This document shows, in pieces, positions 22,221 through 36,100 of a DNA stretch of 64,000 nt. The stretch's first letter is position 1. Each line of letters starts with the position of its first letter. The translations under genes and the position numbers were made by a program. Source of the DNA: Anthoceros angustus (Eukaryota; Plantae; Anthocerotophyta); NCBI GenBank assembly GCA_010909165.1, contig MU008151.1, positions 248,001 to 312,000 on the forward strand, written 5' to 3'. Below the pieces are notes generated by a model. The model was not told the origin of the DNA. It was given only the letters and a program-made list of their open reading frames with translations, and made no database searches.

Positions 22221-23132
22221 CGTAGATGGAAGAATCTAAGTAGACACCCTCAAGGCTGTGCAGATGAGGCTTGGAATTCTCGACATAAAGTAACATCTAA
22301 ACTTTAACCGGAGACAAGCCTGGCCAGGGCGAAATGAGAGTAGCCTTTAGTAGCGGCCGAAAGCCGGCGGGGTCCTCGATTTGTTTCAAGATAAATTCGG
22401 AAAATAGGTTTGGATGATCTTTGCACCGAAAAATTTGCAGACATGCTTCTTGTCATCACGTGAACCTGGGCTTTCCAACGAGCTCCCACTTGCCCAGAAC
22501 CATGCCGAAAAGACTTGGAAATCGCCATCGATTTTTCGACGAGGCAGGCAAGGGCAAGGGCTCTGCGGCTTGGTATGGCACACACTGGACGGTCTTGAAC
22601 CCCATACGCGTACGCTTGTGAAAGTGAGCTTGAGGATGCTTTTCACAGTTCGCACAAAGCCATTTCGAACAAGCTTCACCCCCTGAGGCGACTTCAGGCA
22701 TGCCTGGTGCGACGCCTACCGAAGGCAGCTGAAGCAATGCACAGGCCTGCAACTTCAATGCAATCATGAAGCACATGTGCTTGACGCTTGTTGAGTTGGT
22801 GGAACGCTGCCATGTACAGTAAGCGGCAGAACGCTCGGTTGTATGTATGTACATGAAGGCCTTTTAGGGTTAGACGCTAGGGTTTGTGTCATCAGGCTGT
22901 GCTCTCAACGGTGCACCTTGTAGGCTATGCCCTGTCCTAGGGCTATTAAGCTCGTGTCCTGTACCTTACATTCAAATATTTTACAACAAGCCAAACGGCA
23001 CACCGAATTGGAAGGGCCACGGAATACCGTTGTTCCTTCAAGATTCAAGACAGTGATGGAATCTGCTTCAACCCGGAGAGGAGATTGCATCGCGTGCTGC
23101 CTGTAGAGGGCGAACGCATAAGGCAGGTCGAC

Positions 23133-24719
23133 ATGGCCGAGATGGAGACATCCAGCGATGAGATGATCCTGGTTGTTGAGAGAGCGCTGGGCGAGAAGCT
23201 GAAGTGGACTGATCCGCCTCGAACCAAACCCAATTGGCATCATTGCGATGACGACCCAGATGGAGCGGGAAGCGTGTACACAAGCGGATCCGACTCCGAT
23301 TCGTGCTCGAGCGAGAACGTGCTTGTGGAGCAGCCGTGGTGCTTCATGCTGGTGCAGCCCGGCATGGCAGAGCGGTGGAATGTGATGTGTCCCAAGGAAG
23401 CCACGCGGTTGTGGGTTCTGGACCCCGCGAATCCCAATCCGCTGTGGTACCGGGTGCCCGTGGATAGAGTGCAGTCTGCCATCCGCCGGATCCAGCCGCT
23501 CACCCCGGCCTCCTACATGGTGGGGCTCTACTTCCGCCGCGCGGCCCGGCTCATGTCCTGTTACCTGGTGGGCGATCCCAGCTTCCCGGATACCTGGCAG
23601 GAGATCCAGTGCCAACCCGAGCTGCAGTCGCCCAACTCCCAGGAGCACGTGTTCGCGCACATGCTCGCCGTGCCCGGTTCCCTGGACTTCCGCATTCTGG
23701 AGTTCGGGGCTGTGGAGAATCCGCGCACCGGGGCGGTGACCATCAGGGTTGCCATGTACATCTCCAGCATGATTAAGTGGGGAAAGCAGGGACCGGAGAT
23801 GACCACGGCCTGCAGGAGAATCGAACTCCCAGGCCCTTCCTGTGCACCGGCTGCCAGAAACGTGGGCCAATTCATCTCCAGCTGCTTGAAGGGGAGGATG
23901 GTGTACATCGCCATTGTCACCCCACCGTCGGGGCAGCAGCAGGGGCTCTTGCAGGTGTGGGTGTACAGCTGGGAGGAGAAGGTGTTTGCGGAGCACATCG
24001 GGGCGATGGGATGGCGGAACGACCCGATGCTGGGGAAGGCGGTGTGGGAGACGTTCCAGGTGCTGTTCGACTACGACAGTCAGAGGCTGATGATCTGGGC
24101 CGGGTGGACGGAAGACGAATTGTACACCGGTGGGGTGCACAGGAATGGGAAATGGAAGGTGACCAGATTCGGGAGGCTGAAGTTGGACAATATCGCCAGG
24201 AAGTGGGTGCTGGATCCGACTGAGGTGGGTTCTAAGGTCAGGGACGCGACGTTGTACTTCAGCCAGCCGAGCTATGCGTCGGGATCGGGGCGAGATGTTC
24301 AGATCAGCTCGACCTGTGATGGGGATTTCGTGAGTTGCACGAAGAGTAACTACGGGGAGATAGGGTTCGAGGATTCGAGGAGATCCTGGCGACTGCCCTA
24401 TCCTCCCGACGAGTACTTGGCCGCTCAGGCTGAGGAGAAGGCTGCAGAGTCCGTGTGCATTGGGAGTTTCAGGCCCAGGGTGGGAGACACGAAGGACATT
24501 CGGCAGGTGGCTGCCCAGACGAAATTTGCCCCTCTTTTGGAACAAACGTGGGTGGGAGACACTAAGGACATTCGGCTGGTGGATGCCCAGACGCAATCTG
24601 TCCCTCCTTTGGTGGCTGCCCAGACGAAATCTGTCCCCCCTTTGCCGCGGATGACAGATCAGCTAGACGAGGAGATCGAACAGCGAAGGCAAAAGGGGAA
24701 GATGCAGGAACGCGGCTGA
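23133..24719 (+). CDS. Intronless orphan protein of about 528 aa, possibly a beta-propeller (F-box-associated/kelch-like) fold
   Basis: Uninterrupted GC3-rich ORF conserved with the 17698 paralogue. Acidic Ser-rich N-terminus, Trp-rich beta-strand-like segments (RLWVLDP, LLQVWVYSWEE) and short C-terminal repeats (VGDTKDIR, AAQTK). The fold call is inference. Confidence 0.8.
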   Translation: MAEMETSSDEMILVVERALGEKLKWTDPPRTKPNWHHCDDDPDGAGSVYTSGSDSDSCSSENVLVEQPWCFMLVQPGMAERWNVMCPKEATRLWVLDPANPNPLWYRVPVDRVQSAIRRIQPLTPASYMVGLYFRRAARLMSCYLVGDPSFPDTWQEIQCQPELQSPNSQEHVFAHMLAVPGSLDFRILEFGAVENPRTGAVTIRVAMYISSMIKWGKQGPEMTTACRRIELPGPSCAPAARNVGQFISSCLKGRMVYIAIVTPPSGQQQGLLQVWVYSWEEKVFAEHIGAMGWRNDPMLGKAVWETFQVLFDYDSQRLMIWAGWTEDELYTGGVHRNGKWKVTRFGRLKLDNIARKWVLDPTEVGSKVRDATLYFSQPSYASGSGRDVQISSTCDGDFVSCTKSNYGEIGFEDSRRSWRLPYPPDEYLAAQAEEKAAESVCIGSFRPRVGDTKDIRQVAAQTKFAPLLEQTWVGDTKDIRLVDAQTQSVPPLVAAQTKSVPPLPRMTDQLDEEIEQRRQKGKMQERG

Positions 24720-26669
24720 TGATAGATCTGGTAGACGAGGAGATGGAACGCCGGTGTGTAGCAAAGAGGAGAAGTGATTGTAAGCCGAAGAGAGTAGTAC
24801 TTCGGGAATGTGGACATCGTTTTGAACAACTGACTTCATGAGGGTTTTGAGAAGAATCAAGATTGATTGCAGGCTTAAGTCCAAAATTGTGAGGAGTTAT
24901 TATTGTACCTAGTAGGGGACGCTCTCTTCTCATCAGTCAAGAGGACTTGTGAGTTTAGCTATCTCGTATGCAGTACCTGAGCCCAGACTTGCCAGACTTC
25001 GATGCCAGAAATAGAGATTTGCACTACTAGTGAATGATTGACACTCGAACAACCATACCTATGTGCGTATGTACATGACACTGGTACCAGCCTGCCATGC
25101 TGAGCAGCTAATTCAATTCAATCTGATTTGATTGTGGTGATGCAGAAGATTTCCATTCCCAGCCATCATTCGACGAAATGGTGCCTGCACAGACCCAGCC
25201 TCAGGAACTGCTACAGGATAATTAACCATAGAATTCATGCCATGGCTTCTAATGTTCATGAACAGTCATTTGCAAAAATGGAAGGGGAAGACCTGACGTG
25301 AGAGTTCCTATGGTACCACGATGAATTTCACAACGAATCGGCCACAGACAAATCCTTTAAATCCATGGCATCCTCAAAACCCAATCTACCAGCAGGAAAC
25401 AAACAGCCGAGTCTGTAAGGGATTTCCAGCTACCACGGTGCAGGGGGACCAACCTAACCTAAAATAGATGGGATTGACCATGTACACACCCTCAAGGCTG
25501 CAGATCAAGGCTTGGAATGGATTTCGTTCCACAGCCCAGTGGCACAGGCCATCAAGCTGTGCATGGCCAGCCCAAGCCCATTCATGATTCGGAAACGTGT
25601 TCGGTGCCAACATCAGCAATGCTAACCAACTAGTGCTCCGAGTAGAACCCACTTCCCAAAACAATGTCGGAACCACAAAACGTAAGATTGCAATTAACAT
25701 GAAACTCCCACAAGAGAAGTTGTGCCCCTTAGCTCTCAAGTGGTCACTCTTCTTACCCAGGCCATACTTAGAAGGCAATTGCACCTACTAGCAGAATTTC
25801 AAGCTCTACATAAACACGTGAAGTTCTGAAAAATCTCATGTCTCGTGATCCCCACCGGTAAGGCACATTGCCATAGATCACATCTATCTCACTTTGCACC
25901 CACCCCGCGCCCGTCGAATACAGCTAACCATTTGCTGCTTTTATCAGCCTTGCACAATTAACCCCATTGCCGGCCATGGGCAGAACCATTTCCGAAATGA
26001 TCAACAATCAACCTTGCAACACAAGTATCTGAGCCCCCCTGCTGGAAATGTGCACAACCAGGTGAACAATCAACCTTGCACAGTTATCTGAGCCAAGGGC
26101 GTCTGGAACAATCAACCCTGCACAACTACCTGAGCCCCCCTGCTGGCCAGGGGCAGAACCAGGTTGAAAAACAACCATCCCAGTCTGCAACAACCAGAAG
26201 GAGACCTCTCTGCCTGGGATGTTAAAGAAAATATTATATAGGAGTTTCGAAACAGGAAAATAATGATCACAGCCTGCCGGCCGGTGCAGAAAATGCCTCA
26301 TCTGTAATGATCGGGCCTGACAGTTGCTGCAGAGTTACATTATGGGAGCTCCAGATGCACTTTCTGTGGATGCCTGAACCAGCAGCAAGTCGTGCAGTGG
26401 ACACGGAGATGGTCCAGAATGGAAGCATCGCTTGCCCAAGCCCATTCATGATTCGGAAACGTGTTCGGTGCCCACATCAGCAATGCTAACCAACTAGTAC
26501 CTACTCCGGGTGGAACCTACTTCGCAAAGTAATCTCGGGACCATAAAATCTAAGATTGCAATAACATAAAACTCCCACGAGAGAAGTTGTACTACTTAGC
26601 CTTCAAGTAGTCACTCTTCTTACCCAGGCCTTACCCACAAGGCACATTCATTTGCTGGTTATATCAGCC

Positions 26670-26930
26670 TTGCACAATTAAGCCCATTGCAGTCCATGGG
26701 CAGAACCATTTCCAAAACGAACAATCAACCTCGCACAAGCATCTGACCCCCCCTGGTGGCCATGGGCAGAACCATTTCCGAAACGATCAACAATCAACCT
26801 TGCACACGCATCTGAGCCCCCCTGGAGGCCATGGGCAGAACTATTTCCAAATTGATCCACAATCAACCTTGCACAAGCATCTGAGGCCCCCTGCTGGCCA
26901 TGGGCCGAACCCGGTTGAACAATCAACCAT
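26670..26930. repeat. Tandem repeat with a 69-bp (23-codon) unit
   Basis: acaatcaacc recurs at 26721 and 26790. The - strand translates as SAHGxQGGSDACARLIVDRFGNG repeated. Confidence 0.9.
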
Positions 26931-27502
26931 CCCAGTCTGCAACAACAGAAGAAGCCCTCCCTGCCTGGCATTTTTTTAAATATACTATACAGGAGTTTCG
27001 AAAAACATGAATAATGATTACAGCCCCTGCCAGCCGGTGCAGAAGATCCTTCGTCTGTCATGGTTGGGCCTGACAGCTGCTGCATACATTATGGTTGCTC
27101 CAGATGCACAGTGCGTGGGTTCCTGAACCACCAGCAAGTCGTGGAAAAGAGACGGAGATATTACTCTAGAATTGAAGCACGTACATGCTCAAATTTTGTG
27201 TGCCTGCGGCCTGCCTTCCCTGCTGCAGCCAAGGTGACGATGTCCAAATAATGTCAGTGATGTCGTGCCATCGTCACCAACTGTTGTGACAAAGAGTGTA
27301 GGACCTGGTTACGAAATCTTAATGTCTGGAGTCCTGGTGAGGTGTCTCCAGTTCTGGAACTTCAAACCAACGTGGCACGGCAGGGAATCAAATCCGATGC
27401 AAAAAGAAAACAGCGTCTCCAGTTCTGGACCTTCAGACCAACGCGGAACGGCAGGGAATCAACTCCGATGCAAAAAAGGACAGGTCGACTCGGGATTATT
27501 AG

Positions 27503-27628
27503 TGGAGATGCGGGGTCCCGATCCCCGTACCTTTCGCAGGCTAAGCGAGCGCTCTACAACAACAACAACAACTTTATTTATGTCCCGCTAAGGATGGAAG
27601 AACCATCGACCATCTGAGCTACATCCCA
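27503..27628 (-). pseudogene. tRNA-Ala(AGC) gene interrupted in the D-loop by a LINE tail
   Basis: - strand reads GGGATGTAGCTCAGATGGT [insert] GTAGAGCGCTCGCTTAGCCTGCGAAAGGTACGGGGATCGGGACCCCGCATCTCCA, close to canonical plant tRNA-Ala(AGC). Confidence 0.92.
27558..27607 (-). mobile_element. 50-bp 5'-truncated LINE copy
   Basis: gatggttcttccatccttagcgggacataaataaa(gtt)n matches the LINE 3' end at 50031-50082. Confidence 0.92.
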
Positions 27629-28524
27629 CTGGCTGGCGACCGTCATATTTTACTAATTTTCTTCTTGGCTAGACCGTGGACTCGCACGATTTTTTCCGGA
27701 TAATTCTGTACATACTTCATAGATAGAGGATCTTACAACTCCAGACCAACACAGCTCAAAGTAAACAGCAGCAAGCAAAAAAGGAAGCCCGTCACGCACC
27801 CAAAGGAATCGAGAGCAGGGGTGGCCGAGCAAACCAGGAATTGGAGCAGCCTCAACCCCACGACGCCGGGTTCGATTTGTTTCAAGATCAATGCGGAAAA
27901 TAGGTTTGGACGATCTGATGATCACATCTGTGAACAGAAAATTTTGCTGAAATATATGCTTCTTTTCATGGCCTGAACCTGTGCTTTCCAACGAGCTCTC
28001 ACGTGTCCAGAACCATGAAGAGGCAGGGACGGGCAAGGGCTCTGCGACTCACTGCCTAGCTACTGCGACTACTGCGAGACAAGGAACCGTGTAAAATCAC
28101 AAGTACGCAGTCCACCGTACAAGGGAGACGACCTCGACAGCTCCTTCATGTGCCACTTGAGGCACCAAGTGCAATGAGAGATGGGTTCCATTTCATGAAA
28201 TGCGCATCCTCGACTTGTAAGCCTAAGGCCAAGTGGTCAAGGGGTGTGTCTGCAAGTACGTGGTTTCGACCGCGAGAGTTCGAAACCACGTACATAAATG
28301 CTTGGAATCTCTGTATGCATCCCTGGAGATTCCAGAGATGTTCAGAGATTCCAGGCTGAAATCGAGGATGCTTTTCTTGCAGCTGTGACAGTTTTTAGCT
28401 CAGCTTGACTAGGTGCAGACATCCATCGGCCTCCGAAGAAGGCCTTGCAAGAGCTCATTGGAGACAAACTGCACCGCCAATTCTTGTGAGGCACTTGAAC
28501 AACCTACCTGTACTCCTGAAATGA

Positions 28525-28970
28525 CTTGAGTCTCGGCTTGCCTCTTTGCATATAGGTTTTAGATGTAACGAACCTGTCTGACGGACATCACGATCTCTGC
28601 TTGCCTCTCTGCGCATGCATAGGGTTTCGAAGTAATGAACGTGAAAGTCTCAGGCATCAGTCTCTGTTTGCCTGCAACTCCGGATAGGGTGAAGAAGTGA
28701 TGAAAGTGAAAGTCTCTAACATACGTCAGTTTTTGCTTGCCCCCGTGTCTGAAAGGCTATGAGCCCTTGCGTGCCTCTCTGCATATGCTCGTAATACTGA
28801 CGTCATGTTTGAAAGACTGATCAATATCGTTCTTTGCCTGCCACTATGCCCGGGGTTGTAGTACTGATGGTTTTGAAAGACTTGATCAACATCGCTCACA
28901 GGCCTGCCTCTGTGCCTAGGGCTTTTGTTCTAACGTAATGTGTTTGAAAGACGCTCAGCTCACTCTTTGC
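28525..28970. repeat. Degenerate tandem repeats of about 60 bp upstream of the chitosanase
   Basis: Recurring tctctgcttgcctctctgc..atagggttt..gtaatgaa and tttgaaagac motifs. Confidence 0.55.
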
Positions 28971-29019
28971 TTTCAGGGTGTATCAAAGAGGAATTAGACA
29001 TCAACACGCATACAACTCC

Positions 29020-29540
29020 ATGGAGTTGAGGGGCGCATTGCTGTTGCTGCTGCTCTTCGTCGTCCTGCGCACAATGGCTACCACGAGCGTGGCCGACGAC
29101 CTGCCGCTGAACGACCCGAAATTGAAAGAGATCGCACAGGGACTGGTGTCGAGCGCGGAGAATTCGACGCTGGACTGGAGGGCTTTGTTTTCGTACATTG
29201 AGGGCATCGGGGACGGGCGATGGTACACGGCAGGCCCCGAGGGATTCTGCTCTATTTCAACCCGTCGGTCGCGCAAGGCCAGTTCGCGTACTACGACGCG
29301 GTTGTAATGCACGGCACGGAGGGGATGCTGGACATCCGGGCTCGCGCGCTCATCAGAGCACAGCCACCGGCCGCTGGCGGCAACGAGACCGTCTGGTTGA
29401 GCGTGTTTCTGGACGGGCGGAAGAAGGAGATGCGCAAGGAATCGGCGCACCAAGATACCAGCCCAGTCAACACCGAGCAGCTCGTCTTCCTCCAGATTGA
29501 TTCAATTAGGTTCCGTTTCAGCTGCACCAGTAAACGCTAG
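29020..29540 (+). pseudogene. GH46 chitosanase (actinobacterial type) with a signal peptide, internally deleted and frameshifted
   Basis: LNDPKLKEIAQGLVSSAENSTLDWRALFSYIEGIGDGRWYTAGPEGFCS, then YFNPSVAQGQFAYYDAVVMHG..PPAAGGNETVWLSVFLDGRKKEM..AHQDTSPVNTEQLVFL. These match the Streptomyces GH46 signature (LVSSAENSSLDW..YIEDIGDGRGYT..GFCS; GQFAYYDAIVMHG; AHDDTSRVDTEQRVFL). Confidence 0.93.
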
Positions 29541-30011
29541 GGTGACAGCTGGTGGCGTTGCATTATGGTTCGACGCTTTGAGAGTGAGTGTATTCGACAT
29601 CAAAGCATTACCCGGTAACGTGTTGCTGGCATCTTCTGGTAGGCTTATAATTTGGTGTGTTGTTTGCCAAGGCATTATCTTTGTCAATAGTTTGTTTATG
29701 TTTCCCAAGTTGCTTACCCTAGCCTTTCTATCGAGGTTCTAAGGGCTCTATTGTGCAGGTGCAAATGCAGATGTGTATTAGGGAATCAAACTGCCTGAGG
29801 ATACCAGGGCTTATCCACCAATTGGTAAACCTCTTGTCTCGCAGCAGAACTCTGCTTTCTCTTCCCCTGCGTCCCGGTTACGTTTTGCAGGGTATCGGTA
29901 TCATCCGTTAATCAAGTCTGGGTGCACTTGCAGGCAAAGGCAAGACTTGATTGCGTTTATGTGCTTGCCAGTGATTACTCACTCTACAGGTCAAGAGAGT
30001 GAGTGGTGTAC

Positions 30012-30082
30012 GTGAGCAAGCAGGGAGCGCTTTTGAGCAAGCAGGGAGCGCTTTCGAGCAAGCAGGGCTTTTGAGCAAGCAC
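30012..30082. repeat. 21-bp tandem repeat
   Basis: gagcaagcagggagcgctttt, about 3.5 copies. Confidence 0.8.
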
Positions 30083-30585
30083 GACTTTGTCAGCCAGCAG
30101 GGCTTGCTCTGATTATGTTCTAAGTGGAGCCTGTTTTGAGCAAGCAGGACTTGTTGTAATCTTGTGTTAATTGGAGCCTCGTTTAATCTAGGACTATAGA
30201 AATTATCTTGATGCATATTAGTGTTAATAAAACCTGGTGATGGCGAATACCCTCCGGCGGGACACCATGCAATTTGAGCTTCAAATTTTCAAAATTGAAT
30301 CTGACCGATCAGATAGCATGTCAAAAGCGGGGCCCGCACCTGTGCGATTGTCAGGTCAGGAGCGGGCCGTACCCGTCCGGGCAATCGGGGTGAAGGGCGC
30401 CCGTCCAACCAGGGTGTCATTTTGACCGAGTACTATGTCAGTCCCCGGGACCGCCTAGCCTGGCTACGCTCGGTCCCGGACCGAGCAGGGACCGTGTCTT
30501 TCTGCGACCCTTGGTCACTAAATATAATAAATATTAAATAAATAATTTATAAATAATAATATAAAATATAAATGTCTAGTATATT

Positions 30586-33111: not shown

Positions 33112-36100
33112 TGATAAAATAGCTTACTATTAGGGCACTCTTCACTAGGGCACCTAGGACTTAATAATTAATTTAGTCCTTAGGGCTCTAGGTAGTTTCT
33201 TTTAGTAGTTATTTAATTGGTTAGTTGTTACAACCACTTATTGGTTACAACTACCTTGCCTACATAAAGGCATGTACTTTCTATTATGAATGTAATGCAA
33301 CACATATTGCTAGAGCTTGTGTATGATTCTCATCATGGTATCGAGCACACTTGCTCTTTGTTTGCTTGTGCATCCTCATGCATCTAAGTAGCTTATCTAG
33401 GAGACACTTTCTAATCTAGCATTTGCCTAGATGGATTGTGTTTATCCTAGAATTGCTATCTTTGCATGCATTTTCTTTTATGCTAACATTTCTCTTCTAA
33501 CAATGCTTTTATGCACTAATTCTTTGTTCTTCCTCCATGGATTTGTGTTCCCTTAGAAGGAGAAGGCATAGAGTTAAGAAGAGAAGTAGTCCCGCAAGAC
33601 AACAAGAACAAATTAGGAGCCCAACACATAGAAGCAATAGAAGACAACAAGCTATAGAGGAGAGATAGTAGAAACCTCCTCTTGTATAGCAAACTTCATT
33701 GCATCTATTTTAATTTCTAAACCGGATCAAGGGAAGTTTATCAAGCTAGCTAGGCGTGATTTGCTAGAAGTTTTAGTCCAATTCACGTCAAGGCATTAGA
33801 ATTAGCTCTCCAACATATCCCAAATTTGAATCTGGTATTAGTACTCCTTTATCTTCTAGTCTGCAAGACAAAATAGCATAGAAACTCTTAGATTCAAGAA
33901 ATTGATAGTCAATTAGCAACTCTTAGAATCCAATCCTTTGATCTTAAGGAGAATTATCTGAATTAAGGACAAAATTGTCTATTCTCTCTAAGGTTGATAA
34001 TGCGCAGAGATTTGAGAGCATGCTATCATCATCCGAATCGACTATGATGCAAGAGAAGAGTTTCGCGTGCAATAAAGAAGATGAGATCAGTGAGGCCTAG
34101 TCCTCTAAATCACCTACAATGGCTGGAGTGATCAATAATGAAGAACAAACTGTTCCTAATTCCCATTGGGTAATGATAATGCTAACACTTCATTGCATTA
34201 TCATTATGGTGACGATTTCAAAGAGAAAGATAGATTCAATGGAAGGGATTATGACATCGGTCATTGAGAATGCGAGGAGCTTTGCGGCAAAGAGACCTTT
34301 GGGGCATCGTCGATGGATCAATTCCAAGACCACACGCCCGATTTGAACGTGAACTTCAACCTTCCTGGGACGCCAGGGACGAGAAGGCACAAGATTTATT
34401 GGTCAGTGGACTTTCTCAACATATGGTGAGACATGTCGCACACGCAAAGACCTCCAAGGATATGTGGACTCACCTTGCTCAATTATATTCATCTCAAGAT
34501 ATAATGAGTATTGTTGCAACCTCACGTAATTTCCGCAATCTCTCAATGAAGGAGTCCGACACCATCGAACATCATGTTAATGCATTTCGATTGGCACGAT
34601 CCCATTTGGAATCTTCAATGGCGTACCTATCTCGGAGATGGAGGCTTACGTCATTCTCTTATCTTCATTGCCACCTTCTTATAGGGCTTTCATTACAACT
34701 CAAAATGCGAATTCGCAATGTCGGAAAAGCTGCAGATGAAGATCCAAATGAAGAGCCGGACATCGTGTTTCCGAACTTATTGGAGCATTGCTACGGAGGA
34801 GGCAAGCGACGTCATCATCACTCCAGCCAACAAGCGGTGATGTATTCACAAAGGGTAGAGGAAGAGGACGAGGCGAGGCCGAGGTTCTACTTTCCGACCC
34901 CATATCCCGCACATACTTTCCATGATGGAGAGGCATCTTCTTCAACACCGCAAGAGGTAACAAGAAGGCGGGATTATATGTAATTGGTGCGAATCCCAAA
35001 TCACATGGAAAAGGATTGTCGTAAGAAGAAGAATGGGGAACCTCGCAAGGAGGCCCCACCTGGAGCTAACATTGCAGCGAAGAAACAATCTTCCTCAACT
35101 CCAGGTGCTCACTGTGCTTGGCTTCTTCCAAGCCCTCCAATACCTCATGGTACTTAGACGGAGCTACTTCACATATTTGTTACAACAGAAACTCTTTTGA
35201 GTCTTACTCACCCCAGGACATCGTCCTCCGGAGATGATCACAACCTACCCATTGCGGGTGTTGGTTCGATTGTATTCAAGTGTGATTCGTGGTTCTTCAT
35301 CTTCATCACGTCCTCCATGTTCCTTCAATGTGCAAGAATCTAGTATCACCGCAAGTCTTTGTCAAGAACACACTGCGGTGATCCTTTATGCGATAGTTGT
35401 CTTCTCTCTTTCATAAGTGATAGAAACTATACAATCTGCAGGCACTTTAGATGATGGTCTCTATAGATTGTCGACAAGTGGGAGCCACCCATTACGCTAA
35501 TGTTGCCATTCCAAACCATGACACCTACCCAAACCATGCTTTGGCATTGTCGCCTTGGTCATCCTAATAGTCAAAAATTAATCCAAATGTCTAAGGGAGC
35601 TTTATATAGAACCCTTGCCTTGCAAAGGTTGAACACCTACCTTGGTGCGAATCTTGTGTCCTCACTAAACGACATCAAGAGCCTTTCAAAATAAATCTCC
35701 ACAAAGGGCCAAGTCACCTTTAGAGATAGTGCACAGACATTTGTGGACCCTTGTCTACACCCTCCTTTAGTGGTAGTAGATATTTTTGACCTTCACGGAT
35801 GATTTCTCTCGTTTTGTCTTTTCCTACATCTTGAAAAACAAGAGTGATGCCTTTCACTTCTTCAAGGACTACATGAAATGGGTGAGAGACTTACGGATCA
35901 CAAACTCAAGACCTTACGTTCCGACAATGGTGGAGAGTTTACATCTGAATTTGAGGATTTTGTCGAGTGAAGGTATAGCTCAACAACTTACGATTGTCTA
36001 CACTCCTCAACAAAATGGCGTGGAGAACAAGAATCTACGCCTCCAAGAGATCACGGGTTGCTTATTGGTACAAGCTAAGTTATCTAAGGCTTATTGGGCG

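Follow-up and report, generated by a model that had tools for sequence, protein, structure and literature searches.

The 64,000-nucleotide stretch of Anthoceros angustus DNA analysed here, which we call the window, contains what we take, at a probability of roughly 85%, to be a dead copy of a GH46 chitosanase gene that passed from an actinomycete into an ancestor of a seed-free plant lineage. The copy is recognisably homologous to GH46 and visibly damaged, it has both non-coding and signal-peptide sequence in common with an intact gene on a contig from another public sequencing run, and the two genes form a clade placed among the GH46 enzymes of actinomycetes. From these observations we infer the direction and the age of the transfer, the order of the events that we propose below, and the likely work of intact relatives as secreted chitosanases acting on the chitosan of fungal walls. 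The window copy is itself a pseudogene and almost certainly does nothing, and the idea of an antifungal role can only be applied to intact copies.

Identity of the remnant

At window:29020-29495(+) there lies a GH46 chitosanase in two pieces and two reading frames, with a leucine-rich signal peptide in front (Table 1). Both pieces score above the curated cut-off of 27 bits for the Pfam profile PF01374, the N-terminal one (searched as window:29020-29259) with 49.2 bits over positions 2-38 of 210 and the C-terminal one (window:29247-29537) with 78.4 bits over positions 123-201 of 210, and membership of the family by profile extends over just these two intervals. The match is confirmed as genuine and is far above chance. 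Among solved structures, both pieces match best to two chitosanases of Streptomyces, 4ILY and 1CHK (E 1e-15 to 1e-19), and are 55-65% identical to them.

When the remnant is aligned with 1CHK, the three residues that mark the family by its catalytic motif (N174 numbering) are all in place: catalytic Glu22 in SSAEN (codon 29158-29160; E47 of the window reading), catalytic Asp40 in IGDGR (codon 29212-29214; D65) and Thr45 in YTAG (codon 29227-29229; T70), with Arg42 retained too. We take the roles of Glu22, Asp40 and Thr45 from what is established for CsnA. An initial annotation of this DNA, made from the letters of the sequence, had already proposed a GH46 gene that keeps its catalytic Glu, Asp and Thr behind a eukaryote-style signal peptide, and the Pfam matches to both pieces together with the 1CHK alignment bear out the first part of this proposal. 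For the second part, the leader M-E-L-R-G-A-L6-F-V-V-L-R-T is a predicted signal peptide, judged by its sequence and by its conservation in the intact relative, and it agrees with what had been proposed. A search of the whole 64-kb window for further GH46 pieces returned none beyond the remnant, and an exact-match look-up of its two open frames returned no record.

Table 1. Features in and around the chitosanase remnant, in window coordinates
Feature	Position	Strand	Basis or remark
~50-bp element, two copies elsewhere in the window	27556-27607		repeat search
Dispersed repeat, three other copies in the window	27872-28017
Degenerate ~62-67-bp tandem-repeat array just 5' of the start codon	28530..28960	+	repeat families; homologous to the L001 62-bp x 7.3 array
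Start codon and signal-peptide part (MELRGALLLLLLFVVLRTMATTSVADDL)	29020..29103	+	P0296 has a counterpart (MDFRGALLLLLVVLRTCTAGGP); length differs in frame by 6 nt and by 12 nt
GH46 N-terminal piece, 50 codons, with catalytic Glu, Asp and Thr	29104..29253	+	Pfam E 6.5e-13, 1CHK alignment, conserved-column check
Conserved-residue replacement G43W	29221-29223	+	column 100% conserved in 275 other GH46 domains
Conserved-residue replacement I48P	29236-29238	+	column 98.5% conserved in 275 other GH46 domains
Junction where 214 nt are missing relative to L001 (813-1026; P0296 residues 73-143)	29253	+	DNA and protein alignments
GH46 C-terminal piece, 81 codons, shifted frame	29253..29495	+	Pfam E 7.7e-22, 1CHK alignment, 80.6% DNA identity to L001 1078-1294
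Premature stop TAA of the frame starting at the ATG	29305..29307	+	open-frame reading
Conserved-residue replacement R205P	29463-29465	+	column 100% conserved in 275 other GH46 domains
Tail without demonstrable homology to the intact gene's last 29 codons; shifted frame stops at 29538-29540	29494..29540	+	blastn, tblastn, shuffles
Dispersed repeat, one other copy in the window	30411-30566
Copia gag domain	34264-34983		domain match

An intact relative

The intact relative, P0296, is a 262-residue protein encoded without introns at 598-1386 of L001, a 2475-bp Logan contig of the public run SRR33208241, and it spans the complete PF01374 profile (1-210 of 210, E 1e-90). On L001, too, the flanks of the GH46 gene are AT-richer. 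The leader is common to both loci (MDFRGALLLLLVVLRT in one, MELRGALLLLLLFVVLRT in the other), as are several lineage-specific motifs (LKEIAQ, PPAAGG-ETVWL, RKKEMRKE, AHQDTS and TEQLVFL), and the window copy and P0296 are 68-79% identical at the amino acid level.

How this protein was found deserves a few words. The two pieces of the remnant were searched apart, never as a joined protein, and the word search is confined to proteins with a length 0.55-1.75 times that of the query; on their own, the pieces reached only bacterial fragments. Searched as a fragment against candidates of 62-196 residues, the C-terminal piece returned six bacterial fragments and nothing else, and in bacterial genomes the same piece alone gave 594 pattern matches with none confirmed. 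A word search headed by a close actinomycete protein gave a top 120 made up entirely of Micromonosporaceae-type matches, P0296 being absent among these. It surfaced instead when a distant GH46 was put at the head of the alignment, each piece having its own row, and all the proteins collected were then compared with the pieces by local BLASTP. Two further AT-rich GH46 proteins from Logan, P0034 and P0225 (L082:196-984), were considered as eukaryotic candidates and rejected, since a sigma-54 activator gene adjoins and marks them as bacterial.

Lesions of the window copy

Compared with the gene on L001, the window copy has suffered a deletion whose 214 nt amount to 71 codons and one base, and the frame therefore shifts at the junction. 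A gap of about 60 residues between GFCS and YFNP had been noted before; the gap is there, and only its size has to be corrected upwards. A short-read Logan contig of the public DNA run X1, 776 letters long and covering 28631-29412 with the start codon and the internal junction, carries no 214-nt insert. A further 27 nt, or nine codons, are absent in frame between 29276 and 29277, before GQFAYY, where a few residues had rightly been suspected to be missing; in the intact gene a direct repeat, GGACAA/GGACAG, flanks the stretch concerned, and the deletion fits slippage on that account. The sole possible product from the ATG at 29020 is 95 residues long. The absence of the C-terminus, likewise suspected earlier, is borne out: the final 29 codons of the gene on L001 are lost or have decayed past recognition, and neither blastn nor tblastn of the tail past 29493 finds a match in the intact 3' end. 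One apparent match of the tail to that end, K-x-stop-G-D-S, was dropped when its score was reached by 169 of 1000 shuffles.

In addition to these losses, residues that the family keeps almost without exception have been replaced. P0296 retains G43, I48 and R205, all three of which have changed in the window copy, and I49E adjoins I48P (Streptomyces N174 numbering). Across 275 other GH46 domains, 55 columns have a conservation of 95% or more; the window copy departs at four of these and P0296 at two; G43W, I48P and R205P are unique to the former, and the fourth departure (K to L) is common to both. Unique changes number nine in the window copy against two in P0296, a marginal relative-rate excess (binomial p 0.065). 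What a functional enzyme of this family would need, an uninterrupted frame over the whole two-lobed fold and the family-wide conserved residues, is lacking on both counts, the one through the 214-nt and 27-nt deletions, the tail loss and the early stop, the other through G43W, I48P and R205P.

Might the locus be in use all the same? The true sequence could be in frame and encode an internally deleted secreted protein, or the 95-residue secreted N-terminal fragment could have taken on a new role. The start codon, the signal peptide and the catalytic Glu and Asp are intact, the upstream array described below is still recognisable, and the pairwise dN/dS is low, at 0.15. There are also apparent small insertion errors in the assembly: between 27002 and 30426 the X1 contigs are 1-6 letters shorter than the window without a single substitution, on which grounds the assembly probably carries such errors at about 0.5-0.8%, and the single-base detail of the frame at 29253 is to that extent provisional. 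We nevertheless regard continued use as improbable. The 71 residues of the fold are absent in any frame, and the short-read contig agrees; each of G43, I48 and R205 has changed at a column with a conservation of 98% or more, and I49 is replaced too; the last 29 residues have no counterpart; the branch leading to the window copy is three times that of P0296; and the window array is much more degenerate than that of L001. As for the low dN/dS, it is what one would expect of recent lesions that sit on a long shared history. The window GH46 copy is, in short, a pseudogene.

A shared tandem array upstream

The likeness of the two loci continues upstream of the start codon. On L001, TRF reports an array with a 62-bp unit in 7.3 copies at 82-540, which ends about 57 bp before the ATG, and blastn aligns L001 113-543 with window 28767-28949 at 70-76% identity. 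A profile of the L001 unit, run over the whole window, finds only 28806-28866 (E 2e-12), 28872-28925 (E 5e-6) and, weakly, 28729-28752, and repeat finding within the window adds copies spaced at about 65 bp in 28552-28740. TRF finds no array at this place in the window, where the repeats are far more degenerate than on L001. The GC content of the array is about 42%, and its character is not actinobacterial. Its identity between the loci exceeds the conservation of silent coding sites, and this better preservation could reflect either promoter-like constraint or concerted evolution; we think that the ~62-bp repeats may form a regulatory array gained after the transfer.

Taken together, the shared array and leader mean that both loci descend from one integrated, host-adapted gene, and they argue against separate transfers and against retroposition. 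A processed pseudogene was considered and rejected, since the homology extends for 215 bp or more 5' of the ATG and enters the array, and since no poly(A) follows the remnant.

Origin among actinomycetes

The bacterial relatives point in one direction. Against a collection with one genome per bacterial species, the best 80 loci for P0296 are all from Actinomycetota, at 60-69% identity, and they are drawn from the Micromonosporaceae, Streptomycetaceae, Streptosporangiaceae, Thermomonosporaceae and Pseudonocardiaceae. The C-terminal piece has 98 matches among 1.84 billion representative proteins, the best being multidomain actinomycete chitosanases at 62%; JGI metagenomes yielded bacterial relatives only, at no more than 65%; and the ESM Atlas clusters closest to P0296 are actinomycete GH46.

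For the careful maximum-likelihood tree (IQ-TREE, 39 rows, LG+C20+F+G4, few eukaryotic GH46 being sampled), the separately aligned pieces of the window copy were merged as one row with gaps at the break. In this tree the window copy and P0296 are sisters at 100/99 on a common stem of 0.42, and the pair falls within a group supported at 96/88, every named member of which belongs to the Actinomycetota, nested within the donor clade as a transferred gene would be. The end branches are 0.37 for the window copy and 0.13 for P0296, a difference of about threefold. The same clade, with a support of 99, comes out of a quick tree in which each piece has its own row. The phylogeny that the initial annotation had called for places the pair within the actinomycete radiation, as far as a tree with few eukaryotic GH46 can tell; P0296 being the one eukaryotic relative retrieved, a wider vertical inheritance in plants keeps some probability. 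That annotation had also described the gene as Streptomyces-like, and here a distinction is needed: the actinobacterial type is upheld by the best 80 matches and by the tree, and Streptomyces as the donor is not, several families being equally near. The branching inside the 96/88 group leaves the donor family unnamed, with Micromonosporaceae, Streptomycetaceae, Streptosporangiaceae and others at the same distance.

The considerable divergence of the window copy from P0296 (68-79% amino acid identity, dS ~0.86) might be taken to mean that a second GH46 gene had been transferred independently of the intact plant gene. We consider this very unlikely, because the two are sisters at 100/99 on a long common stem and because the non-bacterial signal peptide and array that they share must postdate integration. 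A host-adapted pair, in a single clade and at most 69% identical to any bacterium, instead speaks for one old transfer that was followed by adaptation and then by divergence.

Integration in host DNA

The window has a GC content of 47%, and a search of it for Rfam families and tRNA found none. Logan contigs of run X1 tile 27002-30426 with 0 mismatches at ~14x, a depth equal to that of the flanks, although X1 may be the assembly's own sample, in which case this support is not independent. From 30340 on, the depth climbs to hundreds, as high-copy repeats would give. In this region a candidate RNA run matches a repeat only. GC3 is 0.81-0.83 in both the window copy and P0296, whereas 80 actinobacterial genes have a mean of 0.97 and a minimum of 0.89, and the lowered value suggests, as far as base composition can, a long residence in the host.

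These data bear on a rival explanation, namely that actinomycete DNA was misjoined to plant DNA through contamination or a chimeric assembly. The nearest named relatives are, after all, actinomycetes without exception, and the coding pieces are richer in GC (0.60-0.63) than the flanks (0.42-0.49). We give this explanation almost no credence. The X1 contigs run from the gene into its non-coding flanks at the even depth just given, the GC3 of 0.81 falls below the minimum of the actinobacterial genes, the leader and the AT-rich 62-bp repeats recur on an independent contig of another run, no bacterial sequence comes closer than 62-69%, and no bacterial genes adjoin, the neighbours being a Copia gag domain and dispersed repeats on both sides. 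Physical integration, in other words, is what the even-depth contigs and the eukaryotic repeats nearby indicate, with the proviso that the run is possibly the assembly's own sample. The claim that the gene is embedded in host DNA, for which the initial annotation had asked for reads across the flanks, is thus well supported by the short-read contigs (subject to the same proviso), the surrounding repeats, the GC3 and the shared, non-bacterial upstream repeats. The remnant even serves as an internal control against contamination, since a stray read from a bacterium would be neither decayed nor adapted to the host.

Several other features of the window are recorded here in their own right. Upstream of the remnant there are tandem repeats of 69 and 71 bp at 26006-26926 and 27344-27476, and a segmental duplication of ~750 bp (26195-26410 versus 26946-27159). 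Two tandem genes, ~90% identical, at window:58506-58835(-) and 60977-61303(-) encode proteins of ~110 residues that begin like a signal peptide (MAMAKLVLV...) and contain several cysteines, with no Pfam match and no exact match on record. At window:12840-14972(+) an open frame of 710 residues, in a stretch of 55-60% GC, with many His/Pro-rich units at its end (HHHKAPAPSP...) and no Pfam match, looks like a structural protein of the wall or else like an artefact of low complexity. Two copies of a repeated element, at window:17509-18881(+) and 23085-24719(+), have frames that share the N-terminal MAETSSDEMIL-VERALGE... and have no Pfam match. Finally, the probable small insertion errors of the assembly could make other genes in this genome look frame-shifted when they are not.

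Divergence and a proposed history

Over 131 mature codons, the Nei-Gojobori comparison of the window copy with the L001 gene gives a dS of 0.86, a dN of 0.13 and a dN/dS of 0.15. The dS implies an old split between the two genes and the dN/dS purifying selection through most of their joint history, and the greater length of the window branch, like the loss of conserved residues, is in keeping with selection having relaxed comparatively recently. Very roughly, with dN assigned to the two branches at 3:1 and dS in equal shares, omega would be ~0.23 for the window branch versus ~0.08 for the other, and the window copy would have spent about one sixth of its branch as a pseudogene. The initial annotation had spoken of a pseudogene of an intact paralogue, and much of this stands: the copy is a pseudogene, and P0296, with the same signal peptide, is an intact relative of the same lineage. 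What has to be given up is any notion of a fresh duplicate, the split being as old as the dS indicates.

The sequence of events that we favour would begin with the transfer of a GH46 gene from an actinomycete to an ancestor of the plant lineage, after which the gene would have gained a eukaryotic secretion signal and the upstream ~62-bp array, and its GC3 would have been lowered. Later the gene would have been present at more than one locus or in more than one lineage, with the window lineage probably remaining under purifying selection for most of its history. The disabling of the window copy would have come later still, through the frame-shifting 214-nt deletion that removed 71 residues of the fold, the 27-nt slippage deletion, the disappearance of the final 29 codons by loss or decay, and the changes at conserved residues.

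A bolder version of this history can be entertained, tentatively and at well below even odds, in which hornwort-like plants carry a small and so far unpublished birth-and-death family of chitosanases of actinomycete origin. Each copy would be driven by the ~62-bp array gained after the transfer, possibly a functional promoter or enhancer, and the window would record the loss of one member.

Comparison with known systems

Gene transfers from bacteria to bryophytes are well documented. For A. angustus itself, the text of the genome paper by Zhang et al. 2020 reports 19 transferred genes (PMC7027989) and names one transferred glycoside hydrolase, the intronless AANG004297, which belongs to GH26; in that paper's text and supplementary text, the terms chitosanase, GH46 and PF01374 are absent (PMC7027989). 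The Anthoceros genomes paper has no treatment of gene transfers, and our literature search found no paper in which a chitosanase of family GH46 is named from hornworts or any other land plant. Against this background, the locus is valuable chiefly for the support it lends to a history of the intact gene, and on its own its value is moderate to low. The intact gene could encode a plant-secreted enzyme that acts on fungal chitosan. To this the remnant adds history, in that an acquired gene became adapted to its host and was present as two or more diverged copies, each under selection, of which one was later lost.

Of the known systems, the closest in family and catalytic motif are the actinomycete-type GH46 enzymes, with CsnA of Streptomyces sp. 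N174 (1CHK) and 4ILY as structural representatives, which share SSAEN with Glu22, IGDGR with Asp40, and Thr45 with the window copy. In contrast to CsnA and 4ILY, the window copy is without 71 + 9 + 29 residues, is frame-shifted and carries G43W, I48P, I49E and R205P; and unlike actinomycete GH46 generally, it has a eukaryotic-looking signal peptide in place of a bacterial leader and a GC3 of 0.81 rather than ~0.97. P0296 on L001 resembles it in signal peptide, 62-bp array, sister position (100/99) and GC3, and differs in being complete, at 262 residues, where the window copy is broken, the two lying a dS of ~0.86 apart. Within the same species, AANG004297 is likewise an intronless bacterial glycoside hydrolase amid plant DNA, with a GC content above the host average, as described in the parts of the paper cited above, and it is of family GH26, whereas the window gene is GH46 (PMC7027989). 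Outside plants, the mycoparasitic oomycetes Pythium oligandrum and P. periplocum have GH46 genes attributed to horizontal transfer, which have been tied to the attack on chitin- and chitosan-bearing walls and which group with those of Chlorella viruses in clade C, a viral donor having been proposed (PMC7720654). These Pythium genes are, like the window lineage, GH46 genes explained by transfer into a eukaryote, but of a different clade, theirs being the chlorovirus one and that of the window lineage the actinomycete one.
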